The notes: a model not told the origin generated them from the sequence alone. A DNA stretch of 64,000 bases from Basidiobolus meristosporus CBS 931.73 (GCA_002104905.1 MCFE01000203.1:66708-130707), one strand, 5' to 3'; shown: positions 11,121-63,300, counted from the stretch's first letter. Numbers and translations are program-made.

Positions 11121-12593
11121 ATGAAGTCCTCGACCGCCTTCCTTGCTCTGGCCTCCTCTATCCTGGCTGTGAACGCTTGCGATTCCGAGTGGCTCCAACG
11201 TAAGATCACCCTCCAGGGGCTTCTAAGACACACCAACAACTTCCAGAAGTTCGCCAATGCTCACAACCACACCCGCGTGTTCGGCAGTGAAGGCCATCAG
11301 AAGACCGTCGACTACATCCATGGGATTGTCAAGAACGCGGGATACGATGTAACCATCCAGGAGTTCACTGCTCCTTATTCCGAAACATTGGCACAGAAGC
11401 TTTCCGTGAACGGCAAGGAGTACGATATCCAGGCAATGACCCTGACTGCCTCCACACCTGAAGGCGGATTGACCGCTCCACTTGTTCTTGTCCCCGATGT
11501 CGCCGGTGAGAAGGGCTCGGCTGGATGTGAAGATGGAGACTTCGCTGGTCTTGATCTCAAAGGGAAGATTGCCTTGGTCGAAAGAGGCTCCTGCGCATTC
11601 AACAACAAATCCTTGAATGCCGGTAAGCTTGGCGCCGTTGCTACCATTGTGTACAACAACGCAGCTGGTGACCTGAAGGGAACCCTCGGTGCTGAGGATA
11701 CTTCCAAGATCCCCACCGGTGGCATCAGTCAGGAATCCGGAAAGGCGTTGATCGAGCTGCTGAAGAAGGGTGAAGTCAAGGCAGCCTTGAATTTGGTGGA
11801 ACTCAATGAGGTTCGTTCCACCTACAACGTGATTGCTGAGACTAAGGGTGGAGATGCATCCAAGGTCGTCATGCTTGGCGCTCACTCCGACTCTGTCCAA
11901 GCTGGCCCTGGAATCAACGACAACGGGTCAGGAAGCGCAGCCCTTCTCGAACTAGCCTACCAGTTCCGCAACGTCAAGCCTAAGAACAAGGTTCGTTTCG
12001 CATGGTGGTCAGCCGAGGAGTTCGGACTCCTTGGATCGGAGTACTACGTCAGCAAATTGCAAAAGACCGACATTGCCAACATCGCGGTGATGCTCAACTT
12101 CGACATGATTGCCTCGCCAAACTACGTGATCCGTATTTACAACGGCGATGAGAGCGGCCAACCTGTGCCAGCTGGCTCTGAAGTTGTCACCAAATTGTTC
12201 GAGGATCACTTCAAGGCTAAGAAAATCACCTATCTCAGTGAGCCAGCTCCCTTTGACCGTACCGATATTGGACCTTTCTCCGCTGTAGGCATTCCATCTG
12301 GAGGCTTGGAAACTGGCGCCGAGAAGCTGAAGACTGAGGAAGAAGCCAAACTGTTTGGTGGTAAGGCTGGCGAGCCATATGACAAGTGCTATCACCTTGC
12401 TTGTGATACCACTGCCAACCTTGCCCACAAAGCATTCTTGATCAATGGCCGCGGTATCGCTCACGCAGTGGCAACCTACTCCCAAGATGTCTCCACCGTA
12501 GCAGCCGCTCGTGGTGGCCCAGCCAAGAAGACCAAAAGAGGAGTGGCCCCAATCAGCCATGGATCAGGAGGCTGCACCTTACCAAAAGCATAA
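11121..12593 (+). CDS. Secreted M28 PA-domain aminopeptidase (aminopeptidase Y / Lap2-like), copy 1
   Basis: Signal peptide, PA domain (KGKIALVERGSC), Zn-ligand motifs GAHSD, NDNGSG, AEEFG, NFDM, YH; intronless 490 aa. Confidence 0.92.
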   Translation: MKSSTAFLALASSILAVNACDSEWLQRKITLQGLLRHTNNFQKFANAHNHTRVFGSEGHQKTVDYIHGIVKNAGYDVTIQEFTAPYSETLAQKLSVNGKEYDIQAMTLTASTPEGGLTAPLVLVPDVAGEKGSAGCEDGDFAGLDLKGKIALVERGSCAFNNKSLNAGKLGAVATIVYNNAAGDLKGTLGAEDTSKIPTGGISQESGKALIELLKKGEVKAALNLVELNEVRSTYNVIAETKGGDASKVVMLGAHSDSVQAGPGINDNGSGSAALLELAYQFRNVKPKNKVRFAWWSAEEFGLLGSEYYVSKLQKTDIANIAVMLNFDMIASPNYVIRIYNGDESGQPVPAGSEVVTKLFEDHFKAKKITYLSEPAPFDRTDIGPFSAVGIPSGGLETGAEKLKTEEEAKLFGGKAGEPYDKCYHLACDTTANLAHKAFLINGRGIAHAVATYSQDVSTVAAARGGPAKKTKRGVAPISHGSGGCTLPKA

Positions 12594-13840: not shown

Positions 13841-15313
13841 ATGAAGTCCTCGACCGCCTTCTTTGCTCTGGCCTCCTCTATCCTGGCTGTGAACGCTTGC
13901 GATTCCGAGTGGCTCCAACGTAAGATCACCCTCCAGGGGCTTCTGAGACACACCAACAACTTCCAGAAGTTCGCCAATGCCCACAACCACACCCGCGTGT
14001 TCGGCAGTGAAGGCCATCAGAAGACCGTCGACTACATCCATGGGATTGTCAAGAACGCGGGATACGATGTAACCATCCAGGAGTTCACTGCTCCTTATTC
14101 CGAAACATTGGCACAGAAGCTTTCCGTGAACGGAAAGGAGTACGATATCCAGGCAATGACCCTGACTGCCTCCACACCTGAAGGCGGATTGACCGCTCCA
14201 CTTGTTCTTGTCCCCGATGTCGCCGGTGAGAAGGGCTCGGCTGGATGTGAAGATGGAGACTTCGCTGGACTTGATCTCAAAGGGAAGATTGCCTTGGTCG
14301 AAAGAGGCTCCTGCGCATTCAACAACAAATCCTTGAATGCCGGTAAGCTTGGCGCTGTTGCTACCATTGTGTACAACAACGCAGCTGGTGACCTGAAGGG
14401 AACCCTCGGTGCTGAGGATACTTCCAAGATCCCCACCGGTGGCATCAGTCAGGAATCCGGAAAGGCGTTGATCGAGCTGCTGAAGAAGGGTGAAGTCAAG
14501 GTAGCTTTGAATTTGGTGGAGTTCAGAGAGAATCGTTCCACCTACAACGTGATTGCCGAGACTAAGGGTGGAGATGCATCCAAGGTCGTCATGCTTGGCG
14601 CTCACTCCGACTCTGTCCAAGCTGGCCCTGGAATCAACGACAACGGGTCAGGAAGCGCAGCCCTTCTCGAACTAGCCTACCAGTTCCGCAACGTCAAGCC
14701 TAAGAACAAGGTTCGTTTCGCATGGTGGTCAGCCGAGGAGTTCGGACTCCTTGGATCGGAGTACTACGTCAGCAAATTGCAAAAGACCGGCATTGCCAAC
14801 ATCGCGGTGATGCTCAACTTCGATATGGTTGCTTCTCCAAACTACGTAATCCGTGTATATAACGGTGATGAAAGTGGACAGCCTGTGCCAGCTGGTTCCG
14901 AAGTCGTCACCAAATTGTTCGAGGATCACTTCAAGGCCAAGAAGATTTCATATGTGAGCGGTGTATTTCCCTTCAGTCGCTCAGATGTTGGACCTTTCGC
15001 AGCAGCTGGCATCCCATCGGGAGGTTTGGATACTGGCGCCGAGAAGCTGAAGACTGAGGAAGAAGCCAAACTGTTTGGTGGTAAGGCTGGCGAGCCATAT
15101 GACAAGTGCTATCACCTTGCTTGTGATACCACTGCCAACCTTGCCCACAAAGCATTCTTGATCAATGGCCGCGGTATCGCTCACGCAGTGGCAACCTACT
15201 CCCAAGATGTCTCCACCGTAGCAGCCGCTCGTGGTGGCCCAGCCAAGAAGACCAAGAGAGATGTAGCACCAGTTCATAATGGATCGGGTGGATGCTCCCT
15301 CCCCAAAGTGTAA
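13841..15313 (+). CDS. Secreted M28 PA-domain aminopeptidase, copy 2
   Basis: Tandem paralog of 11121-12593 with the same motifs; 490 aa; TATAAATA at 13780. Confidence 0.92.
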   Translation: MKSSTAFFALASSILAVNACDSEWLQRKITLQGLLRHTNNFQKFANAHNHTRVFGSEGHQKTVDYIHGIVKNAGYDVTIQEFTAPYSETLAQKLSVNGKEYDIQAMTLTASTPEGGLTAPLVLVPDVAGEKGSAGCEDGDFAGLDLKGKIALVERGSCAFNNKSLNAGKLGAVATIVYNNAAGDLKGTLGAEDTSKIPTGGISQESGKALIELLKKGEVKVALNLVEFRENRSTYNVIAETKGGDASKVVMLGAHSDSVQAGPGINDNGSGSAALLELAYQFRNVKPKNKVRFAWWSAEEFGLLGSEYYVSKLQKTGIANIAVMLNFDMVASPNYVIRVYNGDESGQPVPAGSEVVTKLFEDHFKAKKISYVSGVFPFSRSDVGPFAAAGIPSGGLDTGAEKLKTEEEAKLFGGKAGEPYDKCYHLACDTTANLAHKAFLINGRGIAHAVATYSQDVSTVAAARGGPAKKTKRDVAPVHNGSGGCSLPKV

Positions 15314-25826: not shown

Positions 25827-25963
25827 CAGAGTGGATACATCGGTTAATTTGGATTCAGGTCCTGTAATTTCATGAGTTGTAAAATAAATAGCACCCAGTT
25901 GCTACTCCCGAATCATCAACCACTCATTTGCAAGTGTGCAAGCAAGCATCAACATTCCTTTCA

Positions 25964-26683
25964 ATGTCCGCTCAGTCAACTACCAAGATATCCATCATCC
26001 TCTACACCGTCTATGGCCACATCTATGAGCTGGCCAAGGCTATCAAGAAAGGTCTGGAAACGAATAACGGAGTGGTAGCCACCATCTACCAAGTGCCAGA
26101 GACACTCTCTGATGACATCCTCGCCAAGATCCATGCCCCGCCTAAGCCCGATATCCCAGTGATCACTCCTGACATGCTCACCGAGGCTGATGGCTTCTTC
26201 TTTGGCATCCCCACCAGATTTGGGGCCATGCCAGCTCAGTTCCAGCAGTTCTGGGATGCCACGGGCGCACTCTGGGCCCAAGGAGCACTCCGCAACAAGT
26301 TCGCAGCCACCTTCTTCTCCACTGGCTCACAACATGGAGGACAGGAGACAACAGCAATGACATTCATGACCACTGTTGTCCACCATGGAATGATCTACAT
26401 CCCCAATGGATTCGCATCACCACACTTGACTGACAACTCTGAGATAGTTGGCGGAGGACCATGGGGAGCAGGAACCATCACGAATGGAGATGGATCACGA
26501 ATGCCATCTCAGAAAGAGCTGGAAGTGGCCGAGCTACAGGGACAAAACTACGGAGAGATTGTGGTGCGTCATACTCAACCTCAGTTGGTGGAGAGAGTCG
26601 TCGAGAAGATCGTGGAGAAGCAGGTGCCATCTAAGGCAAATGCGGTGACCAAAAAGTCATTCTTCAAAAAACTCTTTGCCTAA
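25964..26683 (+). CDS. Flavodoxin-like NAD(P)H:quinone oxidoreductase (WrbA/Pst2/Obr1 family), copy 1
   Basis: YTVYGH FMN loop, GIPTRFG, STGSQHGGQET, GGPWGAGT; 239 aa. Confidence 0.93.
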   Translation: MSAQSTTKISIILYTVYGHIYELAKAIKKGLETNNGVVATIYQVPETLSDDILAKIHAPPKPDIPVITPDMLTEADGFFFGIPTRFGAMPAQFQQFWDATGALWAQGALRNKFAATFFSTGSQHGGQETTAMTFMTTVVHHGMIYIPNGFASPHLTDNSEIVGGGPWGAGTITNGDGSRMPSQKELEVAELQGQNYGEIVVRHTQPQLVERVVEKIVEKQVPSKANAVTKKSFFKKLFA

Positions 26684-27382
26684 TACGTGAACCCTACTAC
26701 GCATTTATGTAACCTTTCACCCGATTGCCATCCAGCTTGATTTCCGTCATATTACCTCAGTGATGAATTGGACGTGTACACTGATAACCTTACCTATGTT
26801 TACTATTGAGCTTCCGATTCTCCTATACTAATTCGGGAGGTTGCTGCTGAGCTGCGCGTACCAAGAAATGTAGTATATAATAAACCTAGTAACCATCGCA
26901 CTGCTATTGAATTGCCGTGTTAACTATGTTCCATGGATTTGGGGCCAAATGGCGTAAACTCAAACCAACAACAATTACCAACTGTGAATATGTAGCATAA
27001 CTGACAGAAACATTGATCCCCACCTTTAACCTACCTCTTTCGGCAACTTACCTATCCCTGACGGAATGACTTTACTTTTCATAACAGTATGGTGGCCATG
27101 GTAGTGAACTGGGGCTCAAAACTGCATTTTGCACCCATCCTCCTGCGTGGATTGCAAGCAGTCGCCTTCCATATCGTTGCCACCACATTGGATACATACT
27201 CTTGACCCACCGTGTATACATAGTTGTTCAGATTCTGAGGAATTCTTAGGGCCTCAACAGACTAGTTTGGATTTGGAACACTTGATCTAGAATAACTGTG
27301 GCGTCTGAACAAACCATCACCAAAATCATTGAAACAAGTGTGCCATACAGAGAAGATATGATTAATATGGCCGGAGGGGTGC

Positions 27383-27389
27383 TTACTAA
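27383..27389 (+). promoter_or_regulatory. Yap1/Pap1-type response element TTA(C/G)TAA upstream of flavodoxin copies (27383, 30439, 32066, 35256)
   Basis: Exact matches to the AP-1-like YRE consensus. Confidence 0.45.
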
Positions 27390-27583
27390 CCCCTGATGGT
27401 AAGTAATCTATTTGAAAGTACAAACGGAGATATTACCATATATGGCTCATTTACCCAAGATCGATGGATTCCACCATTAGAAATTGATGCGTGAGATGGC
27501 AAAATAAATAGCACCCAGTTGCTACTCCCGAATCATCAACCACTCATTTGCAAGTGTGCAAGCAAGCATCAACATTCCTTTCA

Positions 27584-28304
27584 ATGTCCGCTCAGTCAAC
27601 TACCAAGATATCCATCATCCTCTACACCGTCTATGGCCACATCTATGAGCTGGCCAAGGCTATCAAGAAAGGTCTGGAAACGAATAACGGGGTGGTAGCC
27701 ACCATCTACCAAGTGCCAGAGACACTCTCTGATGACATCCTCGCCAAGATCCATGCCCCGCCTAAGCCCGATATCCCAGTGATCACTCCTGACATGCTCA
27801 CTGAGGCTGATGGCTTCTTCTTTGGCATCCCCACCAGATTTGGGGCCATGCCAGCTCAGTTCCAGCAGTTCTGGGATGTCCACAGGCGCACTCTGGGCCC
27901 AAGGAGCACTCCGCAACAAGTTCGCAGCCACCTTCTTCTCCACTGGCTCACAACATGGAGGACAGGAGACAACAGCAATGACATTCATGACCACTGTTGT
28001 CCACCATGGAATGATCTACATCCCCAATGGATTCGCATCACCACACTTGACTGACAACTCTGAGATAGTTGGCGGAGGACCATGGGGAGCAGGAACCATC
28101 ACGAATGGAGATGGATCACGAATGCCATCTCAGAAAGAGCTGGAAGTGGCCGAGCTACAAGGACAAAACTATGGGGAGATTGTGGTGCGTCACACTCAAC
28201 CTCAGATAGTGGAGAGAATTGTGGAAAAGATCATTGAGAAGGAAGTACCAGATAGAGCCAAGGTGAGCAGAAAAAACTCGTTCTTCAAGAAAATCTTTGC
28301 CTGA
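27584..28304 (+). CDS. Flavodoxin-like quinone reductase copy 2, with apparent +1 frameshift at 27879
   Basis: Near-identical to copy 1; gatgTccac versus gatgccac in the other copies. Confidence 0.8.
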
Positions 28305-28494
28305 AACTGTACTTATGGTCATGAAGAGCTAACTTAAACCTTGTATTGTACTGACAGTAATATTTTCTAACCCCACTATTTTTTGTTCCAACTGTATAAT
28401 TTTATGCCATGCAATAAACATAGAAAATTAAACGGAACTCTGTGCTAAAGTTCTCTTATGGCTCACAAATTCCTCAAGTATTATGAGCTACCAA

Positions 28495-28512
28495 TATATA
28501 TATATATATATA
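28495..28512. repeat. (TA)9 microsatellite
   Basis: Direct sequence. Confidence 0.9.
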
Positions 28513-29155
28513 TCAGCTGCCTGGCTGCCTGAATGAAGTGTTACGAAGGGAAAGCTTCAAAGCTAGGTCCTCTTGCGTCGTATTTAAACATATGAATTCA
28601 TAAATCTATAGTAAGCGTGCTCCACTACAAGAAACGTCGGGGAACCTGTCCTTAAGCGGCTAATGATGGAGTTTTGTGCGACTATCTACACCTGTATTTC
28701 TCAAATTTAATGTAGCGGTTAGCGGAGGCATCCACCTTGATGATCGCTGTTGTCAAACATGTGGGTGGTTTATTATAGCCGTGAAAACATCTAGGGAAGC
28801 ACCGTAATTGTCATTAATTTATTGCTAAGCAACAATCCACAATCTGTAGTGATAAATTGGAATAGTAGTGGAAAAATTCAGAGGCCAAGTATTTGTAACT
28901 TCAACAAAATCAATAGCCCCTCATTACGGAGCAACGGCACACAAATATTAGTGACGAACTGAGATGGTTGTGGATGAATAGCCATATATGGGTTATTTAC
29001 CCATCACGGATACATCGGTTAATTTGGATTCAGGTCCTGAGGAAGGTTGACCATTTCGTAATAAATACCACTTGCAGGCTCTACGCTGTGTCATACAATC
29101 ACTCAAATTGATAGTTCAGCACCTACATTCGACTATTCCATATCTTTACTACGCA

Positions 29156-29875
29156 ATGACAGTACAATCCAAGACTAAGGTTTTCATCATCCTCTACACC
29201 GTCTATGGCCACATCTATGAGCTGGCCAAGGCTATCAAGAAAGGTCTGGAAACGAATAACGGAGTGGTAGCCACCATCTACCAAGTGCCAGAGACACTCT
29301 CTGATGACATCCTCGCCAAGATCCATGCCCCGCCTAAGCCCGATATCCCAGTGATCACTCCTGACATGCTCACCGAGGCTGATGGCTTTTTCTTTGGCAT
29401 CCCCACCAGATTCGGGGCCATGCCAGCTCAGTTCCAGCAGTTCTGGGATGCCACAGGCGCACTCTGGGCCCAAGGAGCACTCCGCAACAAGTTCGCAGCC
29501 ACCTTCTTCTCCACTGGCTCACAACATGGAGGACAGGAGACAACAGCAATGACATTCATGACCACCATCGTCCACCATGGAATGATCTACATCCCCAATG
29601 GATTCGCATCACCACACTTGACTGACAACTCTGAGATAGTTGGCGGAGGACCATGGGGAGCAGGAACCATCACGAATGGAGATGGATCACGAATGCCATC
29701 TCAGAAAGAGCTGGAAGTGGCCGAGCTACAAGGACAAAACTACGGAGAGATTGTGGTGCGTCATACTCAACCTCAGTTGGTGGAGAGAGTCATCGAGAAG
29801 ATCGTGGAGAAGCAGGTACCATCTAAGACCAATACAGCGGTCAAGAAGTCATTCTTCAAAAAACTTTTTGCCTGA
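29156..29875 (+). CDS. Flavodoxin-like quinone reductase copy 3
   Basis: ATG at 29156 (MTVQSKTKVFIILY), intact ORF, same motifs. Confidence 0.93.
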   Translation: MTVQSKTKVFIILYTVYGHIYELAKAIKKGLETNNGVVATIYQVPETLSDDILAKIHAPPKPDIPVITPDMLTEADGFFFGIPTRFGAMPAQFQQFWDATGALWAQGALRNKFAATFFSTGSQHGGQETTAMTFMTTIVHHGMIYIPNGFASPHLTDNSEIVGGGPWGAGTITNGDGSRMPSQKELEVAELQGQNYGEIVVRHTQPQLVERVIEKIVEKQVPSKTNTAVKKSFFKKLFA

Positions 29876-30647
29876 CATATGAATCAGACAATACAATTGT
29901 GTAACCTTTCAATCAACGGCTCCTGGCCAAAATCAAGTCTTAATTACATCAGTATTCAACCGGTCTTGAATACTGATAACCTTACCAGTCTTTATTATCT
30001 AATATTGAATCTTCGGACTCAGAATCAGGATGTTGAGACTAAATTAAAAGCAACAAGCAGTATAGAATATAATAAATATAATGGCGATTATAATAACCAC
30101 GTTAAAAGAGTTATATTAAGGTTGTTGGGCCAGACGAGGTAGGCTCGGAATAGCAACGACTATAACTTAACCGTAACTCCAAACTTTATTGTAAGTTAGC
30201 TCTTTGCATGCATGTCATTCGGTGTGAGTTGCTCATAGTCGCTTGTAGATTTTAGACTGGCTGTTGACTAGCTCTATCTGGAAAGCTACTAGAGATTCGG
30301 AGTATTCCCTCAAAGAACTCATCAATCTAGGTTGGGCGCTTGATTAATGATAGACAGAGATACTGTCTTCAAATAACTAAAACTGATATGTACACATAGA
30401 TTTGAATTTAGATGCGGTTAATATGTTTGCAAGGATGCTTACTAACCTCTGATGGTAAGTAATCTATTTGAAAGTACAAACGGAGATATTACCATATATG
30501 GCTTATTTACCCAAGATCGATGGATTCCACCATTAGAAATTGATGCGTGAGATGGCAAAATAAATAGCACCCAGTTGCTACTCTCGAATCATCAACCACT
30601 CATTTGCAAGTGTGCAAACAAGTAAGCAAGCATCAACACTCCTTTCA

Positions 30648-31367
30648 ATGTCCGCTCAGCCAACTACCAAGATATCCATCATCCTCTACACCGTCTATGG
30701 CCACATCTATGAGCTGGCCAAGGCTATCAAGAAAGGTCTGGAAACGAATAACGGAGTGGTAGCCACCATCTACCAAGTGCCAGAGACACTCTCTGATGAC
30801 ATCCTCGCCAAGATCCATGCCCCGCCTAAGCCCGATATCCCGGTGATCACTCCTGACATGCTCACTGAGGCTGATGGCTTTTTCTTTGGCATCCCCACCA
30901 GATTTGGGGCCATGTCAGCTCAGTTCCAGCAGTTCTGGGATGCCACAGGCGCACTCTGGGCCCAAGGAGCACTCCGCAACAAGTTCGCAGCCACCTTCTT
31001 CTCCACTGGCTCACAACATGGAGGACAGGAGACAACAGCAATGACATTCATGACCACTGTTGTCCACCATGGAATGATCTACATCCCCAATGGATTCGCA
31101 TCACCACACTTGACTGACAACTCTGAGATAGTTGGCGGAGGACCATGGGGAGTAGGAACCATCACGAATGGAGATGGATCACGAATGCCATCTCAGAAAG
31201 AGCTGGAAGTGGCCGAGCTACAGGGACAAAACTACGGAGAGATTGTGGTGCGTCATACTCAACCTCAGTTGGTGGAGAGAGTCATCGAGAAGATCGTGGA
31301 GAAGCAGGTGCCATCTAAGGCAAATGCGGTGACCAAAAAGTCATTCTTCAAAAAACTCTTTGCCTAA
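30648..31367 (+). CDS. Flavodoxin-like quinone reductase copy 4
   Basis: Intact ORF; C-terminal tail and 3' flank match copy 1. Confidence 0.93.
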   Translation: MSAQPTTKISIILYTVYGHIYELAKAIKKGLETNNGVVATIYQVPETLSDDILAKIHAPPKPDIPVITPDMLTEADGFFFGIPTRFGAMSAQFQQFWDATGALWAQGALRNKFAATFFSTGSQHGGQETTAMTFMTTVVHHGMIYIPNGFASPHLTDNSEIVGGGPWGVGTITNGDGSRMPSQKELEVAELQGQNYGEIVVRHTQPQLVERVIEKIVEKQVPSKANAVTKKSFFKKLFA

Positions 31368-32274
31368 TACGTGAACCCTACGACGCATTTATGTAACCTT
31401 TCACCCGATTGCCATCCAGCTTGATTTCCGTCATATTACCTCAGTGATGAATTGGACGTGTACACTGATAACCTTACCTATGTTTACTATTGAGCTTCCG
31501 ATTCTCCTATACTAATTCGGGAGGTTGCTGCTGAGCTGCGCGTACCAAGAAATGTAGTATATAATAAACCTAGTAACCATCGCACTGCTATTGAATTGCC
31601 GTGTTAACTGTGTTCCATGGATTTGGGGCCAAATGGCGTAAACTCAAACCAACAACAATTACCAACTGTGAATACGCAGCACAACTGACACAAATATTGA
31701 TCCCCACCTTTAATCTACCTCTTTCGGCAACTTACCTATCCCTGACGGAATGACTTTACTTTCATAACAGTATGGTGGCCATGGTAGTGAACTGGGGCTC
31801 AAAACTGCATTTTGCACCCATCCTCCTGCGTGGATTGCAAGCAGTCGCTTTCCATATCGTTGCCACCACATTGGATACATACTCTTGACCCACCGTGTAT
31901 ACATAGTTGTTCAGATTCTGAGGAATTCTTAGGGCCTCAACAGACTAGTTTGGATTTGGAACACTTGATCTAGAATAACTGTGGCGTCTGAACAAACCAT
32001 CACCAAAATCATTGAAACAAGTGTGCCATAGAGAGAAGATATGATTAATATGGCCGGAGGGGTGCTTACTAACCCCTGATGGTAAGTAATCTATTTGAAA
32101 GTACAAACGGAGATATTACCATATATGGCTTATTTACCCAAAATCGATGGATTCCACCATTAGAAATTGGTCCGTGAGATGGCAAAATAAATAGCACCCA
32201 GTTGCTACTCCCGAATCATCAACCACTCATTTGCAAGTGTGCAAACAAGTAAGCAAGCATCAACACTCCTTTCA

Positions 32275-32994
32275 ATGTCCGCTCAGTCAACTACCAAGAT
32301 ATCCATCATCCTCTACACCGTCTATGGCCACATCTACGAGCTGGCCAAGGCTATCAAGAAAGGTCTGGAAACGAATAACGGGGTGGTAGCCACCATCTAC
32401 CAAGTGCCAGAGACACTCTCTGATGACATCCTCGCCAAGATCCATGCCCCGCCTAAGCCCGATATCCCAGTGATCACTCCTGACATGCTCACTGAGGCTG
32501 ATGGCTTTTTCTTTGGCATCCCCACCAGATTTGGGGCCATGCCAGCTCAGTTCCAGCAGTTCTGGGATGCCACAGGCGCACTCTGGGCCAAAGGAGCACT
32601 CCGCAACAAGTTCGCAGCCACCTTCTTCTCCACTGGCTCACAACATGGAGGACAGGAGACAACAGCAATGACATTCATGACCACTGTTGTCCACCATGGA
32701 ATGATCTACATCCCCAATGGATTCGCATCACCACACTTGACTGACAACTCTGAGATAGTTGGCGGAGGACCATGGGGAGCAGGAACCATCACGAATGGAG
32801 ATGGATCACGAATGCCATCTCAGAAAGAGCTGGAAGTGGCCGAGCTACAAGGACAAAACTATGGGGAAATTGTGGTGCGTCTTACGCAGCCCCAAGTAGT
32901 GGAGAGGGTAGTGGAGAAGATCGTGGAAAAGCAAATCAAGGAAAAGGTAAAGTTCGTTGAGAAGAAATCATTCCTGAAGAAAATATTCTCCTAG
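32275..32994 (+). CDS. Flavodoxin-like quinone reductase copy 5
   Basis: Intact ORF, distinct C-terminus KQIKEKVKFVEKKSFLKKIFS. Confidence 0.93.
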   Translation: MSAQSTTKISIILYTVYGHIYELAKAIKKGLETNNGVVATIYQVPETLSDDILAKIHAPPKPDIPVITPDMLTEADGFFFGIPTRFGAMPAQFQQFWDATGALWAKGALRNKFAATFFSTGSQHGGQETTAMTFMTTVVHHGMIYIPNGFASPHLTDNSEIVGGGPWGAGTITNGDGSRMPSQKELEVAELQGQNYGEIVVRLTQPQVVERVVEKIVEKQIKEKVKFVEKKSFLKKIFS

Positions 32995-33738
32995 CCTTGT
33001 CGAATATACATTTGTGTAAAGCCGTTGCATTCATATTGGCGATATTGGGAAACTGAATTTGTATGCCATTATGCTCGAACTTGTAAGAATAGTAATAATT
33101 AATAAAACTTATATGATACTTTGCCCGCGTAAGTCAATTCGAATGCGGGTTCTTTATATCGGAACTTAACGGAGCCTTGAATCGGCCAAGGAACTTTTTA
33201 ATGGAAACTTGGATGATCACAGGTGTTAAAAGTAAGCATAAAGCTTGAATCCTATTTCCATTCTTAGATCACGACTCAACTACATACCTTCGGCTAAAGA
33301 GTAGATCGCTTGGGAGTTTAACAGTATATAGATATATACGGTAGTTCTGCCGGTAACCCCAGATTAGAATGCATTGCAACACGAGCATCCCATGAAGCGT
33401 GAAAGATAAGATTCAATGGCGGAGCTTTGTCAAACATCTTGCATCAAGGTTATCCGGAAAAATAACCTAGCTTAGGATGATTATGCATAAAATCATTACG
33501 AAGTATGCTACTAACTTCTCGGTTGATGCACACATTCGACTGCGTGCGACAAGGGGAAGTGTTATATCGGGCCAATTTAACCAGATCTATAGCTATGCTT
33601 TGGAAATCCGGAGATACAACTTGTCGTTATATGTACTTTATCCATCGCCATTGCTAAATAGGTATGCACCCTCAGAAAAGAAAATATCGATTTTATATGT
33701 ATCATGAGCACACAATCAAAATCAAATGTATGATCACA

Positions 33739-34080
33739 GGCCCAAGGAGCACTCCGTGACAAGTTCGCAGCCACCTTCTTCTCCACTGGCTCACAACACG
33801 GAGGACAGGAGACAACAGCGATGACATTCATGACCACCGTTGTCCACCATGGAATGATCTACATCCCCAATGGATTCGCATCACCACACTTGACTGACAA
33901 CTCTGAGATAGTTGGCGGAGGACCATGGGGAGCAGGAACCATCACGAATGGAGATGGATCGCGAATGCCATCTCAGAAAGAGCTAGACGCGGCCGAGCTA
34001 CAAGGTCAATACTATGGGGAGGTTGCGGTGCGTCACATTCAACCTGAGATTGTGAAGTGAGTGGTCGAGAAATAAAATAG
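33739..34080 (+). pseudogene. Flavodoxin-like fragment (3' half only), unit 6
   Basis: Begins at ggcccaaggagcactcc; no 5' half; premature stop in the tail. Confidence 0.85.
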
Positions 34081-34629
34081 AAGTACCAGCCGAAAATCAG
34101 TCCAGAAGAAACTCTTTGCATAAGGCGCTACTCCTGATCTTCACCGGTCGATAAAAGACCATTTATCAAGGAAGATGGCATTAAAGAAAGCGCCTAATAT
34201 GGCCGAATTGTCGGGCGGAAAGTCATTTCTTAAGGTAACTCGAAACCATGTGCGCTGATAACCTTGTTGACACCTTGGCGGTGACCAATTTGAATAGATC
34301 ACATACACAAGCATCTACTGATGAACTCGACCGGTCCTATTTCAAATTTTCTTCCATTATTTGGGATGGATCCCGCAATCAACGCGCTTGGGCGCCTCAC
34401 ATGCTTTACATGAAAACTACATACATCCAGTATCGAATTTCATGTTGGGATATTTAAGGAACACATGTGATTATGAGCGGTGAAAATACCATAACTATCC
34501 GTACTTGTATCAGTTCATGTAGAACTTCACCCCTGGTCGGATGTAATCAATGAGGAACTCCCCCGTATTTGGTCAGTTTATCTATCTAGATTAGATGAAT
34601 TCAAGTAACCATATTGGTAGATATGTTAG

Positions 34630-34850
34630 CCCTACAACAGCAATGGCATTCATGACCACCATCGTCCACCATGGAATGATCTACATCCCCAATGGATTCG
34701 CATCACCACACTTGACTGACAACTCTGAGATAGTTGACGGAGGACCATGGGGAGCAGGAACCATCGCGATCAGAAAGAGATACAAGGTCAAGACTACGGG
34801 TAAATTGTAGTCCGTCATATTCAACCCCAGATGGTGGAGGAAGCAAATAT
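34630..34850 (+). pseudogene. Flavodoxin-like fragment, unit 7
   Basis: TTAMAFMTTIVHHGMIYIPNGFASPHL... followed by a deletion and frameshift. Confidence 0.8.
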
Positions 34851-35414
34851 GGGAAGAGTGGACCTTCTGAAGTCATCCCTCTAAAATCAACACACACCAT
34901 CATTGTCAACTAAGGATTATCCTTGAACACCAGTAAAGCCTTCATACTTACTAATCCATGTTGGACCTCGGAAAAAATCTAAAAATGGACACATCTGATT
35001 ATTTTTGTGATGAGCAACCCCATCATTCATATGATATCGGAAAGCCACTTCGCACAATTCTTTTCAGTATGGATACTTGCGTTAGGCAGAGAATTCTCTT
35101 TCTAGGTGTGATACTCTTTCTATATCGATCTAGTAGACGGTCTATGAGTCAACACTGAATATCAAGCGTGAATGCCAATTTGTAATGATATCCAAATGCG
35201 GGATATTTATCCAGCGAAATCTCGCCGAAGAGTATTTGCAATCCTTTTCGGTTGATTAGTAACGAATCTAGGATGATCCTTAACACTTGGAAATGAAATA
35301 AATACCGCTTCATAGCACCTACCTCCTACATCGAATTTTGATTGCTGCATCTTTTGCTTTATACCTTTCCCTTTGCAAATACATTAACGTCCTCCTAGTG
35401 TGACTTATTGCGTA

Positions 35415-36134
35415 ATGGCCGTCGAACCAAAGACCAAGATTTACATCATCCTTTACACCGTCTATGGCCATATCTACGAAGTGGCCAAGGCTGTCAAGAA
35501 AGGAATTGAGAAAAATGAACGAGTAGAAGTCACCATCTACCAAGTGCCAGAGACACTCTCTGATGACATCCTCGCCAAGATCCATGCCCCACCTAAGCCC
35601 GATATTCCAGTGATCACTCCTGACATGCTCACCGAGGCTGATGGCTTCTTCTTTGGCATCCCCACCAGATTTGGGGCCATGCCAGCTCAGTTCCAGCAGT
35701 TCTGGGATGCCACGGGCGCACTCTGGGCCAAAGGAGCACTCCGCAACAAGTTCGCAGCCACCTTCTTCTCCACCGCCTCACAACATGGAGGACAGGAGAC
35801 AACAGCAATGACATTCATGACCACCGTTGTCCACCATGGAATGATCTACATCCCCAATGGATTCGCATCACCACACTTGACTGACAACTCTGAGATAGTT
35901 GGTGGAGGACCATGGGGAGCTGGTACTATTGCCAACGGTGATGGATCCAGAATGCCATCTCAGAAAGAGCTGGAAGTGGCCGAGCTACAAGGACAAAACT
36001 ACGGAGAGATTGTGGTGCGTCATACTCAACCTCAGATTGTGGAGAAAACCGTGGAGAAGGTGGTAGTGAAAGAGGTGCCGGCTCAGGCTGAAGTAACAAA
36101 GAAGAAATCGTTCTTGAAGAAAATCTTCAACTAA
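35415..36134 (+). CDS. Flavodoxin-like quinone reductase copy 8 (most divergent intact copy)
   Basis: MAVEPKTKIYIILY...KKSFLKKIFN, intact. Confidence 0.93.
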   Translation: MAVEPKTKIYIILYTVYGHIYEVAKAVKKGIEKNERVEVTIYQVPETLSDDILAKIHAPPKPDIPVITPDMLTEADGFFFGIPTRFGAMPAQFQQFWDATGALWAKGALRNKFAATFFSTASQHGGQETTAMTFMTTVVHHGMIYIPNGFASPHLTDNSEIVGGGPWGAGTIANGDGSRMPSQKELEVAELQGQNYGEIVVRHTQPQIVEKTVEKVVVKEVPAQAEVTKKKSFLKKIFN

Positions 36135-54357: not shown

Positions 54358-55995
54358 TTATCTAAGACAGGCAGTCACGCATTCCAGAATGACCATGCGA
54401 TTTACGGGTTTTGATAAGTAGGCATTCATCCCTACCTCAAAACATCGCTCAATGTCCGTTTTGATGGTGTTTGCCGATACTGCGATGATAGGTGTTTGAC
54501 GGTCAAACTTCCTTATTTCTGTGGTAGCTTCGTAACCGTCCATCACTGGCATTTGGCAATCCATGAAAATCACCGAGAACTTGATTCGCTTGCAAACTTC
54601 AACAGCCTGCGATCCATCCACCACGGATGTTATGCTGATGAAATGATCAGTAATCTGCCGGCGCAATACTGTCTGATTGATCGCATTATCATCCACAATG
54701 AGTGCGGTAAGTCCTTTGAAAGCAGGGGGCCTCTCGAGAGCCTGTTGCACATCAAACCTCATCTTGATCCAAAATAAGGTCCCTATTCCAACTTCGCTGG
54801 TAACTCCAATGGTTCCTTGCATCTTCTCGACCAGAAATTTCGTTAATGAGAGGCCCAGACCGTGCTTCCAGGTATGGGATTCGCCAACCTGGCCGACTGA
54901 TTCGAACAAATTGTCCACCCTTTCCGGGGCAATTCCGCTGCCTGTATCTGATATCTGGATGAACAATAGCAGCTCACAATTGTCATTTGACCAATTCTCT
55001 ACGGTTACGGATATGGCGCCCTGTTCAGTATATTCTATTGCATTGTCGACTATGTTCCTGATGATCTCCTCAAAGCGTACCGCGTCCCCAACAACCACCT
55101 GCGTCATAGAGGGTGGCACAGTGAAGTTAAGCTCCAGGCTCTTTCGAGAAGCTGAAAGTCGAGTCTTTCTGTGAACGGACTCGAAGATCTTGATTGGTTG
55201 GAACCGAATGAATTCCAACGCAAGCTCCTCCGTCTCGATTTTGGCGATGTCCAGCATGTCGTTTGTTAAGCGCGATATCCGCTCACTACTTTCCTGCATA
55301 ATCTCCAAAAGTTGTCGCTGCTCCTCTGTCAGAGGTGAGGATTGCAGAAGTTCAATACACCCCGTAATCCCATGAATAGGTGTTCGAATCTCATGACTCA
55401 TGTGAGCAAGAAATTGTGACTTCATGATTGCCGCTTGTCTATCCGCCTCCAAATCCGCAACGAATGATTTTGCCTCACCCAGTGGGGAGGATCCTATCCT
55501 TAATTCCATACAACGGACGACATGTTGCGCAAGAGCCTCTAGCCCTCTCTTCTGTTTTGTGTCAAGCCTGTTCGGTTTGGTGTCAATCGCACATAGTGAC
55601 CCTAGAGCATGGCCCCGTGCTGATATGAGAGGCGCGCCTGCATAAAATCCGATTTCTTCGGATGATTCGCTTGTGCTCTCGATAAAGCGCAGGTCTTGTG
55701 TGGTATCATTTACAATTAACGTCATTTTCGTTGCCACGACATATGAACAAAACTCCACACCTTTCGCTCCTGGTTTGATGTTAGTGTTGTATCGTGATTT
55801 GACATAGCAGTGTTCGTCGGTGAGAAAACAAATCATTGCCGCAGGAGTGCCACACACTTGAGCGGCAAGGATTGCGATATCATCAAAAATAGGATCAGAA
55901 TCGGCTTGAAGTACATTGTACCTTGCCAACTCGTACATCCCATTGTCTTCTTCGTATATTCGGTTGTCTTGGGGCTTATAGATAGCTATCCTCAT
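54358..55995 (-). CDS. Hybrid histidine kinase GAF-HisKA-HATPase-REC, intronless (545 aa from the ATG at 55995)
   Basis: GAF (FDDIAILAAQVCGTP...FYAGAPLI), H-box MSHEIRTP, N-box NIVDNA, G1 DTGSGI, GLGL, REC LIVDD/FMDCQMPVMDG/LSKP. Confidence 0.92.
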   Translation of the reverse strand: MRIAIYKPQDNRIYEEDNGMYELARYNVLQADSDPIFDDIAILAAQVCGTPAAMICFLTDEHCYVKSRYNTNIKPGAKGVEFCSYVVATKMTLIVNDTTQDLRFIESTSESSEEIGFYAGAPLISARGHALGSLCAIDTKPNRLDTKQKRGLEALAQHVVRCMELRIGSSPLGEAKSFVADLEADRQAAIMKSQFLAHMSHEIRTPIHGITGCIELLQSSPLTEEQRQLLEIMQESSERISRLTNDMLDIAKIETEELALEFIRFQPIKIFESVHRKTRLSASRKSLELNFTVPPSMTQVVVGDAVRFEEIIRNIVDNAIEYTEQGAISVTVENWSNDNCELLLFIQISDTGSGIAPERVDNLFESVGQVGESHTWKHGLGLSLTKFLVEKMQGTIGVTSEVGIGTLFWIKMRFDVQQALERPPAFKGLTALIVDDNAINQTVLRRQITDHFISITSVVDGSQAVEVCKRIKFSVIFMDCQMPVMDGYEATTEIRKFDRQTPIIAVSANTIKTDIERCFEVGMNAYLSKPVNRMVILECVTACLR

Positions 55996-56788
55996 TCCTA
56001 TACTGACCGGGGTGATATAATTGATGGTAGTTGCAAGCAATGGAAACAGCAGCAGGCACTTATTAAATAGGAGAAAATCGAGATCGATGTTACTGTTGCT
56101 CAAACATATAATTATCTTCCGGAACGTTACCAGTAGGGGAGGTCGATGATAGCGATGTTAAGCACACTGGTCTCAACTTGGTGGATTTAGTTGTGCCGAT
56201 GTGTATTGAATCCTCGATTATAATACTCGTCTTAAGAAATAGCTGCCGATTGCTGTTTTAGATTCTCATTCTATTGGTGCATTGCCGAATCATTTCAACT
56301 CGCGTATGTCGCATTCTTCCATATAGCGATGGCTTGGTGTTATGAATTAGTGTATCCAGTATTGTTTTGCTTGACGAACATCTGATCCATATTAGGTAAT
56401 CAGCAGAGTTGTAGCTTTACCATAGTAAATGTACAGAGCGCTTGCAATCATGGATCAAGGAGTTCTCAGTATCCTGATGGTCCTGAATGATATCGCTGAT
56501 AAGTAGCGCATGGGGATTGGTGATTTGTCGTGTAGGACATCATGCCTTTGGTGGATTGATCGTCCATTTCAGATCACATCGGGTACAGCTGATTTTGTCA
56601 AGTAGATCATCAATATTGGCTAATTGATTCAAGTGAGCACAGCCGTCTAGCACAGCCGTCTAGCACAACCCTCCAATTTCGCCATCACTGCGCATTACTG
56701 AATATGTCAGCATATTGCCTTAGGACTTGAAAGCGTTTTGGAAGTTGGAACTCTTGGGGCTCTCATAATGATTTCAATAGATTGTATA

Positions 56789-60210: not shown

Positions 60211-60393
60211 TTAGGGGGGGGGACAGTCACCAACAGGTGAAATCTTTCTTTCAGTTGAAACAAAGAAGCCAGCTCTACTGTTGTAGCTTTGATACAAGAG
60301 TGTTAGGGGGGAGACAGTCACCAACAGGTGAAATCTTTATTTCAGTTGAAACAAAGAAGCCAGCGCTACTGTTGTAGCTTTGATACAAGAGTG
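60211..60393. repeat. ~92-bp tandem duplication of the LINE 3' terminus
   Basis: Units 60211-60302 and 60303-60393 are near identical and include the ORF2 stop. Confidence 0.92.
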
Positions 60394-63300
60394 TGTAGCT
60401 GAGGGGAACTTGTAGGTAAGTTAATAAGAAGTGATGATAGCTCTTCAGTGCTCAAGACACTGTTCAGTGGGAAGGGGGGTAGCAAGAGAGGTAAGAATGA
60501 CTTGTGAACAACATTAATGAGGGGAATGTGATAAGGATTGATATTCATCATAAAGGGAGTGTGCTGCTGCAGATATTGCTGCCAAAGGTCTGTCAAGTAC
60601 TTCAGGTAGGCCAGCTTGGGCTTTTCTGACTGCAGAATATAGTGAGCAAACTTCTTGACTTCAGGATCTCCAAGTATAGTTCTCCAGCAGGAGCCAGGTG
60701 TTGTGTGGTGTGTTCTCTTCCAGGCCTTAATCAGTGGGTTGTTGCAGTTGTGAAGTCTGAGGTATAATCTGGTTCTAAGGTAGAGAAGTCTGATCTTATA
60801 GGGCATAAACCCAAAAGCACCAAGAATAGCATGTCTGTAGGGGCATTCAGGCAAATGAGGCACCAAGGAGGTAATGCACCATACTGCAAACTTGTCAAGC
60901 TTAGTGCAGTCTCTAGAAGTAAGAGAGAGAAGTGGTAAGCCATATTCCAGGACAGGGAAGACAAACTGCTTGAGTAGAAGGAGGCAGCTGGGAGCTGAAG
61001 TTGTAGGAGGAGTAACAGCCAGTAGCTTGTGGAGTGCCTGTCTTGCCAGGATAATTCTCTTCTTCAGGTGTGCTCCAGAGTCTAGTCCAGTAGGAAGGAA
61101 AGGAAAGCCAAGATATGTAGCAGAAACCTGAGCAGGTAGAGTGGAGTTCTCCAAGTTGATGGGAGAGCCCAAAGGTACTGTCTTTGCAATGGAAAGCTGG
61201 AGATTATTCTTCTGCAGATACTGGTGGATGGTCTGGGAGTCTTGTTGCACATTGGAGGAGGATATTCTGATGTCATCAGCAAAGAGAGTAACCAGGCAGT
61301 CAGCTGAGAGTCTTGGGAAATCATTCAGGAAGATGGCAAACAGTATAGGACCAAGCACAGAGCCTTGAACCACTCCATTAGGAACTGAGAACACAGATGA
61401 TTGCTCACTTGGGTGCAGAATTCTTGCTTGTGGATCCAGAAACAGAGACGTGACAAGGAGGGTGAGAGAGGTACTGGAGAAGCATTGCAACTTGGACCAA
61501 AGCAGATTTCTGTCAACTGAATCAAAGGCTTTAGTAATATCAAACAGAACAGAGAGATACTTGCACTGGAGAGAGTGATCTTGGCTAAGTATGACTGCAT
61601 ATTCCAAGGAGAGGCCAGGAACAAAGCCAAACTGTGTAGGATGAAACTTGAGGGAGTCAGAGTAGAGCTCCTGAGCAAGCAGAAGCTCAAACACCTATCT
61701 GCAGGTGGGCAGCAGAGATATTGGCCTGTAGGAGCTAGGATCCAGGTGCTTTCCTTTACCCTTGTAAAGTGGCAGAACATTTACAAAGGACCATTCCTCA
61801 GGAGTAGAAAGCTGGGCTGAGCATTGCTGAAACAGTGGAAGCAGAAGTGCAGACATGGCCTTGGTACTAGTCTTCAGAAGCTCATAGGAGATTGTGTCCA
61901 CACCTGGAGCAGTAGAGTTGGGAAGCCTCTTGAGCACATTATGGATTCTCCTTTGATCAAGTGCAAGTGGGATGGGCAGAGTCTTGAAGTCAGGATGAAA
62001 GCCAGGAGTTGAGTGCTGCTTTGTAGAGAAGAAGATGTTAGCCAGCTGTTCTGTTGAAGGTAACTTCCTGGCAGAGGGCCTCATTGCCCTGTAGAGTCTT
62101 GAAACTGTTCTTGTTATAGAGTTGGAAGATTGCAGAGGCAAAGAACTCATAATATGATCCCAGAGCTGAGTATGCAGAGTGTGGTGAATTGCCTTGGAGT
62201 GGTGTATGGCTGTCAGGAGGAGTGTCTCTGTTTTTGGGTTAGGGAAACTCAAGTAGCTTTGTTGCAGGGCTGAAACAATGGATTCTCATTTTCTTGAGGT
62301 AATAGCAGTAGTCTTGCATGGCAGTGAGAGGGAGGCAGACACCAGAATCAGATGCTTCACAAAGAGCCAGGCATAGTTGAGATCATCTGGCAGAGAAAGT
62401 AGCAAACTGGCAAGCTTCAAGTAGTTCCCAAAGTCTTTCTTCTGATTCTTGGTAGCTTTGTGGGTGAGCACAGTAAGTTTTGGCAGCTTCTTCTTCACAA
62501 CTGGTTGCATAGAAAGGGACCAGGCTGGGTGGTCAGAGGCTCTCAAGGATCCTAGCTCAGCTCCAGAGAATTGCTTAACTTCATTCACAAAGTAGAGGGC
62601 AGCAGCAGAAGGGCAGATCCAGTCAACACATCTTTTCTCAGATTGAGCACCTAGTGCTAGCAGATGGTTTTCTCTCAGGATGTTCAGCAGGAATGTAGAC
62701 CTTGGCTTCATTCTTGCAGTCAGAGTAGTCTTGTTCTCAGGATGGGGAATGTTGAGATCTCCAAGCAAGATAATAGGTGTTGATATAGATTGCTGGTATT
62801 GCTGAACTTTCTGGCATATAACTTGCACTTCCTGAAGGGCAAGACTTGGAGGCAGATAGCAGAGCACCAGACTGATAGTTGGCAACTGGAGAGCAGCACA
62901 GTAAGGGGAGTAAAGAGGAACACAGAGCTGAGGAGTATTGATGGTAGAAGAGATGAAGCAGATAGAGGAGGTATTCTGTGTTCTAGGAGTAGAAAAGCAA
63001 TATAGATTAGTCAAAAGTATAGAGGGTAGCTGGACATCAATCAAACACAGGAGGGAAAATCTTGAAAGAAGTCTCTCTAGAGTTGGTCTTGGTGGCTGTA
63101 TGCTGTTGCAGTTAAGCAACAGAACCTCAGGTAGTCAGGCAGAGGTTGTAGCTTCTTCAGAGGCAGCATTGACAATGTGAACTGCAGAGTCCCAGAGCTC
63201 TTCATATGGTGCATCACTTAAGTCAGCAAGGAGGGAAATGGCATGATTCTTGAGGAAGTATGCCACATCATAGGAGGGGCTTGTCTCTTGATGGCAGCAA

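Follow-up and report, generated by a model that had tools for sequence, protein, structure and literature searches.

The 64,000-nucleotide stretch of Basidiobolus meristosporus CBS 931.73 analysed here (MCFE01000203.1:66708-130707, hereafter the window) carries, between 25.9 and 36.1 kb, an array of genes for flavodoxin-like quinone reductases whose long copies continue beyond the enzyme fold into a short basic and aromatic C-terminal tail. Comparison of copy 4 with the window by blastn, together with tblastn, delimited eight units, all on the plus strand: five are intact genes, one is a frameshifted copy, and the other two are truncated remnants. A preliminary description of the locus had counted six full-length genes and two fragments; the eight units were recovered, with the number of intact genes lowered to five and the sixth long copy found to be frameshifted. 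Each long copy, frameshifted copy 2 included, has 239 codons, and the products of the array match annotated proteins of B. meristosporus CBS 931.73 exactly or almost so.

Copy 1 (25964-26683) is an intact 239-codon gene of the WrbA/Pst2 type, the tail motif being encoded by its last ten codons (26651-26680). Copy 2 (27584-28304) is full length and frameshifted by an extra T at 27879, which makes it either a pseudogene or the product of an assembly error, and its tail motif can be read in frame downstream of the extra T. Copies 3 (29156-29875), 4 (30648-31367) and 5 (32275-32994) are intact, the first having a 5' end and upstream region unlike those of the other copies, the second being identical to the public protein P0001, and the third presenting a linker without proline and an F-L / I-F-S variant of the tail. 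They are followed by the two remnants: unit 6 (33740-34120), which retains everything from codon 105 onwards and has in-frame stops within the linker and a decayed tail where two Phe positions are gone, and unit 7 (34634-34839), preserved as two fragments that cover codons 129-172 and about 180-210 and containing a stop and a change of frame. Copy 8 (35415-36134) closes the array; it is intact, and of all copies it has diverged furthest, matching the rest at 88-90% DNA identity. The array grew in part by duplication of a two-unit segment, since the block at 25881-28244 is repeated on the same strand at 30557-32934 with 97.4% identity across 2380 bp; homology between the two blocks stops just short of the tails of copies 2 and 5.

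Two of the public gene models depart from the plain reading frames in ways that look like annotation artefacts. The model of copy 2 (P0003, 224 residues) bridges the frameshift via an implausible intron that skips 15 codons and, as a consequence of the frameshift, is devoid of the flavin mononucleotide (FMN)-binding loop (the S-T-G...G-G-Q segment). The model of the copy 3 region 29156-29875 (P0002, 232 residues) has seven codons (V-R-H-T-Q-P-Q) removed as a 21-nucleotide "intron".

Judged from their sequences, the array proteins belong to the WrbA/Pst2/Ycp4 family (CAZy AA6) of flavodoxin-like, FMN-dependent type IV NAD(P)H:quinone oxidoreductases, and would perform the two-electron reduction of quinones. 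Their initial identification as quinone reductases agrees with the Pfam matches (FMN_red and Flavodoxin_1), with the NCBIfam equivalogs NF002999 (220-226 bits for a cut-off of 141) and TIGR01755 (218-225 bits for a cut-off of 132.5), both covering residues 7-202, and with the best solved relative, yeast Pst2 (5MP4, E 4e-62). The FMN and active-site segments (the Y-G-H loop, P-T-R-F-G, S-T-x-x-x-G-G-Q-E and H-H-G) show little or no variation among 24 aligned fungal homologues, all intact copies included, and the alignment to 5MP4 is consistent with them. Enzymes of the WrbA type are tetrameric. The short members of the family, such as yeast Pst2 and Escherichia coli WrbA, have their core in common with the array proteins, aligned end to end over residues 8-201, but unlike the array copies they terminate at about 198-207 residues, with neither extension nor tail. 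Because the Pst2 match spans residues 8-201, the last 38 residues or so of the array proteins (202-239) lie outside the fold.

This extension is composed of a spacer of about 25 residues followed by a conserved ten-residue basic and aromatic end. The spacer comprises three tandem 12-nucleotide repeats coding for V-E-[RK]-x (26577-26612 in copy 1, and the equivalent place in the other copies) and a variable stretch, which has a proline in all but one of the six long copies. The repeats display a hydrophobic moment of 0.57-0.67 and zero net charge, and are absent from the Basidiobolus paralogues of 279-283 residues considered below. The terminal residues follow the pattern K/N-S-F-F/L-K-K-L/I-F-x, preceded by one to three extra Lys or Arg, in all six long copies; the net charge of the tail varies from +3 to +5, and the hydrophobic residues at positions i, i+1, i+4 and i+5 are kept in every one of them. 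No cysteine occurs in the extension of any of the six, and six-frame translation of the window revealed no further occurrence of the terminal motif. The preliminary description had reported the motif, the V-E-[RK]-rich linker and the lack of a cysteine-lipidated tail, and on these three points it was accurate, the linker being in fact built of the three repeats.

It had also noted that the motif outlasts the divergence of the linker. Of the 120 best homologues, most have about 204 residues and end where Pst2 ends. Basidiobolus has short forms (P0012-P0014) as well as long ones, among the latter P0007, encoded on a different contig of B. meristosporus, and P0009 and P0010 from B. ranarum. These three proteins of 279-283 residues have Pro/Ser/Ala/Thr-rich linkers that cannot be aligned with those of the array, and they end in K-R-K-S-F-L-K-K-L-F-S; a further protein, P0036, has as its end a longer variant of the tail. 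Among these 120 homologues, no Basidiobolus protein has a cysteine end. In a tree built on the core domain, all array copies fall into a single clade (support 99, starred), sister to the 279-283-residue forms (support 93), while the Mucorales long forms (polybasic plus CFCM) group by themselves and the Kickxellales long forms, of both kinds, are scattered among short forms. The tail is thus not confined to the array, and its distribution indicates a genus-wide feature of Basidiobolus.

The selective regime was estimated with Nei-Gojobori counts from every pairwise comparison among the six long copies, pooled by region. The proportions of synonymous (pS) and nonsynonymous (pN) differences were 0.104 and 0.013 in the core (codons 13-205; pN/pS 0.12), 0.547 and 0.249 in the linker (codons 206-229; pN/pS 0.46), and 0.682 and 0.097 in the tail (codons 230-239; pN/pS 0.14). 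The last ten codons are therefore constrained like the enzyme core, and the spacer drifts. Since synonymous sites are near saturation in the extension while pS is low in the cores, which are 95-99% identical between copies, the copies are old and homogenisation has acted on their cores, its presumed cause being gene conversion that halts near the end of the fold. The high identity of the cores and the fact that three of the eight units are dead could also be expected if the extension were functionless, the array being a neutral by-product of a duplication-rich genome and the tail being kept simply by the youth of its copies. This explanation is highly improbable: the tail residues have been retained next to nearly saturated synonymous sites, the tail is common to unlinked paralogues and to a second species, and it has decayed in pseudogene unit 6. 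A neutral leftover was accordingly rejected on the selection data, and with a pS of 0.68 close to saturation and yet a pN of 0.097, the motif does not owe its persistence to chance.

The range of C-terminal ends in the family became apparent in a wider survey, in which 150 diverse homologues were drawn from 1.84 billion representatives, and 38 of these have long C-terminal extensions; homologues from Dikarya were added by a third search, for which P0183 served as seed. The preliminary description had stated that its reading would be refuted if fungal WrbA homologues normally carried this tail; the tail is not the fungal norm, as most homologues have about 204 residues and are tail-less. The long forms usually terminate in polybasic residues together with cysteines (CaaX or di-Cys). 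The Ycp4 proteins of Candida, Spathaspora and Wickerhamomyces finish in CIIM or CTIM with an upstream Cys, the long forms of Microbotryum, Rhodotorula, Sporobolomyces and Naganishia in a Lys run followed by G-L-F and then C-C-G, and the long forms of Mucorales in CFCM or W-F-C-C-G; ends made of a hydrophobic stretch plus CCG are found in Pucciniomycotina and others. Cysteine-free basic amphipathic ends are present in Basidiobolus, Linderina, Dipsacomyces, Smittium simulii, Mycoemilia scoparia, Cladochytrium replicatum and Wallemia mellicola. Two further proteins have cysteine-free ends, one of them being P0183, which ends in R-K-S-I-F-K-K-I-F. When the cysteine-free label was mapped on a 144-row tree, ten changes were needed, at least five of them forced by starred branches, and P0183 was placed on a long branch distant from Basidiobolus.

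The Ycp4-type long proteins (of S. cerevisiae and Candida, and the CFCM forms of Mucorales) resemble the array proteins in their homologous core, non-conserved spacer and short basic C-terminal module, extending like them beyond the Pst2 fold. They differ in the module itself, which in the Ycp4-type proteins bears terminal cysteines for prenylation or palmitoylation (a CaaX box or a Cys pair) and in Basidiobolus consists of a cysteine-free Phe/Leu/Lys motif, and also in the spacer, of about 25 residues in the array versus about 50-330 in other long forms. The Basidiobolus tail is the solution of one genus within a recurrent class, with analogues in at least five other lineages, rather than something unique to the array. 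In a literature search, the cysteine-free class of tails and its repeated exchange with lipidation signals appear to have no prior description, and nothing relevant on amphipathic-helix tails of flavodoxin-like quinone reductases was found in the searchable literature. A search with the tail region only (copy 5 residues 200-239, maximum E 10) returned 19 candidates, none of which obtained a score; the query is powerless against 5.8 billion sequences, so that absence is not implied.

Some of the surveyed proteins deserve individual mention. P0183, of 322 residues, comes from an intron-poor eukaryote, its gene lying at L002:1500-2468 (Logan SRR22388143) and on a 27-kb SRR22388026 contig, with an EF1-gamma-like gene as its neighbour; its tail is nearly the same as that of Basidiobolus, the core is only about 49% identical, and the latter has no named relative above about 57% identity. 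Linderina macrospora P0310 and L. pennispora P0020 have the amphipathic end S-I-F-R-R-F-[LI]-N-K-L-K in common, and one of the two has an added terminal Ala-Cys, which may represent an intermediate between cysteine-free and cysteine-bearing ends. Dimargaris cristalligena presents three consecutive flavodoxin-like genes on one contig (H4R33_003537 to 003539; P0112, P0113 and P0119). In Apophysomyces a short form adjoins a CaaX long form (DFQ28_010793 and 010794; P0054 and P0066), an arrangement that resembles the adjacent PST3-YCP4 pair of Candida albicans (PMC4556627). Homologues from the dinoflagellate Durusdinium and other protists (P0121, P0281-P0284 and P0015) reach 440-490 residues, some of them with two WrbA-type domains per chain (two matched stretches in P0121).

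Considering these data together, the tail of the array proteins is probably a lipid-independent peripheral membrane anchor. This is the reading that would best explain the tail and it is well supported by comparison, because the cysteine-free tail occupies the position where homologues carry their polybasic plus CaaX or di-Cys lipidation signals; the replacement of lipid anchors is complemented by selection, because the tail is under purifying selection and has decayed in dead unit 6. The E. coli cell division protein MinD offers a useful term of comparison, its end (K-K-G-F-L-K-R-L-F-G-G, from NC_000913) having in common with the array tails the spacing K-x-F-L-K-[KR]-L-F within the terminal 8-11 residues. 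The 11-residue hydrophobic moment is 0.41 for MinD and 0.39-0.50 for the tails, the net charge +4 and +3 to +5, respectively, and the summed interfacial transfer energy is similar on the Wimley and White scale. MinD is a P-loop ATPase and the array proteins are flavoproteins, so that there is no homology and the resemblance is one of convergence only. The membrane binding of MinD is moreover switched by ATP-driven dimerisation, with no such switch being evident in the array proteins. In both cases a single tail is expected to bind weakly and in an oligomer-dependent manner; in MinD a single tail binds too weakly and the dimer is required (PMC8155659).

The preliminary description had called the tail a MinD-like amphipathic helix. 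The sequence pattern and the hydrophobic moment do match those of MinD, the amphipathicity is moderate rather than exceptional, and the AlphaFold2 predictions are mixed, a helix being obtained only with the isolated segment. The isolated 40-residue extension of copy 5 was modelled as one helix over its residues 6-39, with a predicted local distance difference test (pLDDT) score of about 90, and single-peptide structure predictions are biased towards helices. The tail would thus be helix-competent.

Several points weigh against anchoring of this kind. Between 20 and 39% of shuffled sequences of the same composition reach the hydrophobic moment of the tail, and the moment therefore supports the description "MinD-like" and not "more amphipathic than chance"; composition, rather than the order of residues, may carry the signal. 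The full-length AlphaFold2 model (a monomer built on a 24-row alignment, mean pLDDT 72) has its last core helix at residues 183-204, and everything beyond it (205-239) is coil, at a pLDDT of less than 50. The selection estimate relies on ten codons and on copy pairs that are not independent, for which reason the case rests more on the comparison of paralogues. Short, tail-less proteins of the Pst2 type reach the yeast plasma membrane (bioRxiv 10.1101/2023.04.27.538084), meaning that the tail is not strictly required for membrane association. Finally, a basic and hydrophobic end of ten residues might just as well serve to bind a protein, for instance calmodulin or a component of the eisosome.

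The coil of the full-length model and a residue order no more amphipathic than that of shuffled sequences also speak for the main alternative, itself a variant of the anchor idea, according to which the tail would be a regulated basic-aromatic patch, comparable to the MARCKS effector domain or the K-Ras4B tail, and not a constitutive helix. Such a patch would be extended and its binding to acidic lipids electrostatic, while phosphorylation of the invariant Ser, or Ca2+/calmodulin, would release it, so that the association would be switchable. In agreement with this, the hydrophobic residues are immediately preceded by a Ser in all Basidiobolus tails and in most of the independent analogues (Thr in Wallemia), with basic residues at -1/-2 and +3/+4 from it that fit the context of a basophilic kinase. 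However, Ser is also a good helix N-cap, the corresponding residue of MinD being Gly, and the hydrophobic spacing i, i+1, i+4, i+5 conserved in all copies would be needless for a purely electrostatic patch. The patch is considered unlikely, although it stands ahead of the two other alternatives, namely the functionless extension and protein docking.

In the docking alternative, the tail would be a docking or sorting signal directing the enzyme to eisosome proteins, another organelle or lipid droplets, with no direct binding to the bilayer. Large hydrophobic residues favour lipid-droplet surfaces, which is a point in its favour. In addition, yeast Pst2 and Rfs1 still gather at eisosomes despite being tail-less (bioRxiv 10.1101/2023.04.27.538084), so that protein contacts exist in the family. 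Against it, unrelated lineages substitute generic lipid anchors or quite different amphipathic sequences for the tail, which argues for a generic membrane over one particular partner, and the tail matches neither the type 1 peroxisomal targeting signal nor a C-terminal KKxx. These two signals were rejected for the wrong spacing and because the protein is soluble. A docking or sorting role is on balance improbable.

Returning to the membrane anchor, a plausible sequence of events can be proposed. The lysines of the tail would bind acidic lipids on the cytosolic face of a membrane, most likely the plasma membrane, and the Phe/Leu/Ile face (i, i+1, i+4, i+5) would enter the bilayer in the manner of MinD, the tail forming a short amphipathic helix. 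A single tail would be weak, but the four tails of a WrbA-type tetramer could provide avidity. The tether would keep the enzyme beside membrane quinones (ubiquinone) and incoming lipophilic quinones, with the spacer allowing the active sites to reach the membrane surface. The tail would in this way perform the role that CaaX or di-Cys lipidation has in the Ycp4-type homologues. Tandem amplification and gene conversion of the cores would maintain five near-identical active genes, presumably for dosage.

Mammalian FSP1 can be viewed as a functional analogue, being a membrane-tethered NAD(P)H-dependent reductase that reduces ubiquinone of the plasma membrane and guards against lipid peroxidation; unlike the array proteins, it has an unrelated fold and is tethered via N-terminal myristoylation. 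Fungal flavodoxin-like proteins are quinone reductases located at the plasma membrane, where they probably maintain ubiquinone in the reduced state and so prevent lipid peroxidation; they are needed for Candida virulence, and the Candida Ycp4 has an extension ending in CaaX (PMC4556627). Yeast Ycp4 is palmitoylated, the mechanism of membrane recruitment of the family being otherwise called unknown in a 2023 preprint, whose title casts the flavodoxin-like proteins of yeast as ferroptosis-protective (bioRxiv 10.1101/2023.04.27.538084).

Regarding the amplification, family counts have already been published as showing that AA6 benzoquinone reductases expanded in Zoopagomycota, and were discussed alongside the Beauveria-Tribolium benzoquinone story (PMC8778642), of which the arthropod hypothesis in the preliminary description is an echo; a role of the array in defence against arthropod benzoquinones is speculation. 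A Yap1-type basic leucine zipper (bZIP) consensus is found at 27383-27389 (+), about 200 bp upstream of copy 2, with the same site at 30439 and 32066, about 200 bp upstream of copies 4 and 5, respectively, and at 34948 and 35256, both upstream of copy 8. The window contains 14 such sites for 5.9 expected, five of the 14 within the array, where enrichment upstream of the copies is weak; three of these five are copies of one spacer, and together the sites give a weak hint of oxidative-stress control.

The surroundings of the array include genes for a sulfatase, an HtrA-like protease, two M28 peptidases, a class II tRNA synthetase, an amino-acid permease and a hybrid histidine kinase, in addition to L24e-like and eIF4E-like genes recognised by reading of open reading frames (ORFs) only; none of the neighbouring genes in the window suggests an operon-like functional link to the array. 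The peptidases correspond to two 490-residue ORFs at 11121-12593 and 13841-15313 (+), each with PA and Peptidase_M28 domains at near-identical Pfam scores, so that genes have been duplicated in tandem 10 kb upstream of the array as well. The hybrid histidine kinase ORF at 54361-56103 (-) has GAF, HisKA, HATPase_c and receiver domains. At 60369-63119 (-), ORFs with RVT_1 (PF00078) and Exo_endo_phos_2 look like a retroelement without long terminal repeats, of the long interspersed nuclear element (LINE) type; such domains are at odds with a Copia element.

In summary, the enzyme, its association with fungal membranes, the lipidated tails of Ycp4 and the expansion of the family were already known. 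The five-gene array, with its homogenised cores and diverged tails, provides a clear case of what is presumably gene conversion ending at a domain boundary, and the maintenance of five near-identical active genes suggests selection for dosage. A further proposal, put forward here as unlikely, is that the fungal long flavodoxin-like quinone reductases carry interchangeable anchor cassettes (CaaX, polybasic plus di-Cys, or a cysteine-free end), which would have replaced one another many times, and that the tether of Basidiobolus, whose invariant Ser fits a basophilic kinase, is reversible and controlled by phosphorylation; if true, a highly expressed tetrameric reductase would be attached to the plasma membrane or released from it in response to oxidative or quinone stress. 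The ten-residue tail is a portable test object, as it can be deleted, swapped or transplanted. For the family as a whole, long forms nearly always end in what would be a membrane-anchoring module, and lipidation signals have given way to cysteine-free amphipathic ends at least five times, which suggests that selection has acted on membrane tethering as such.

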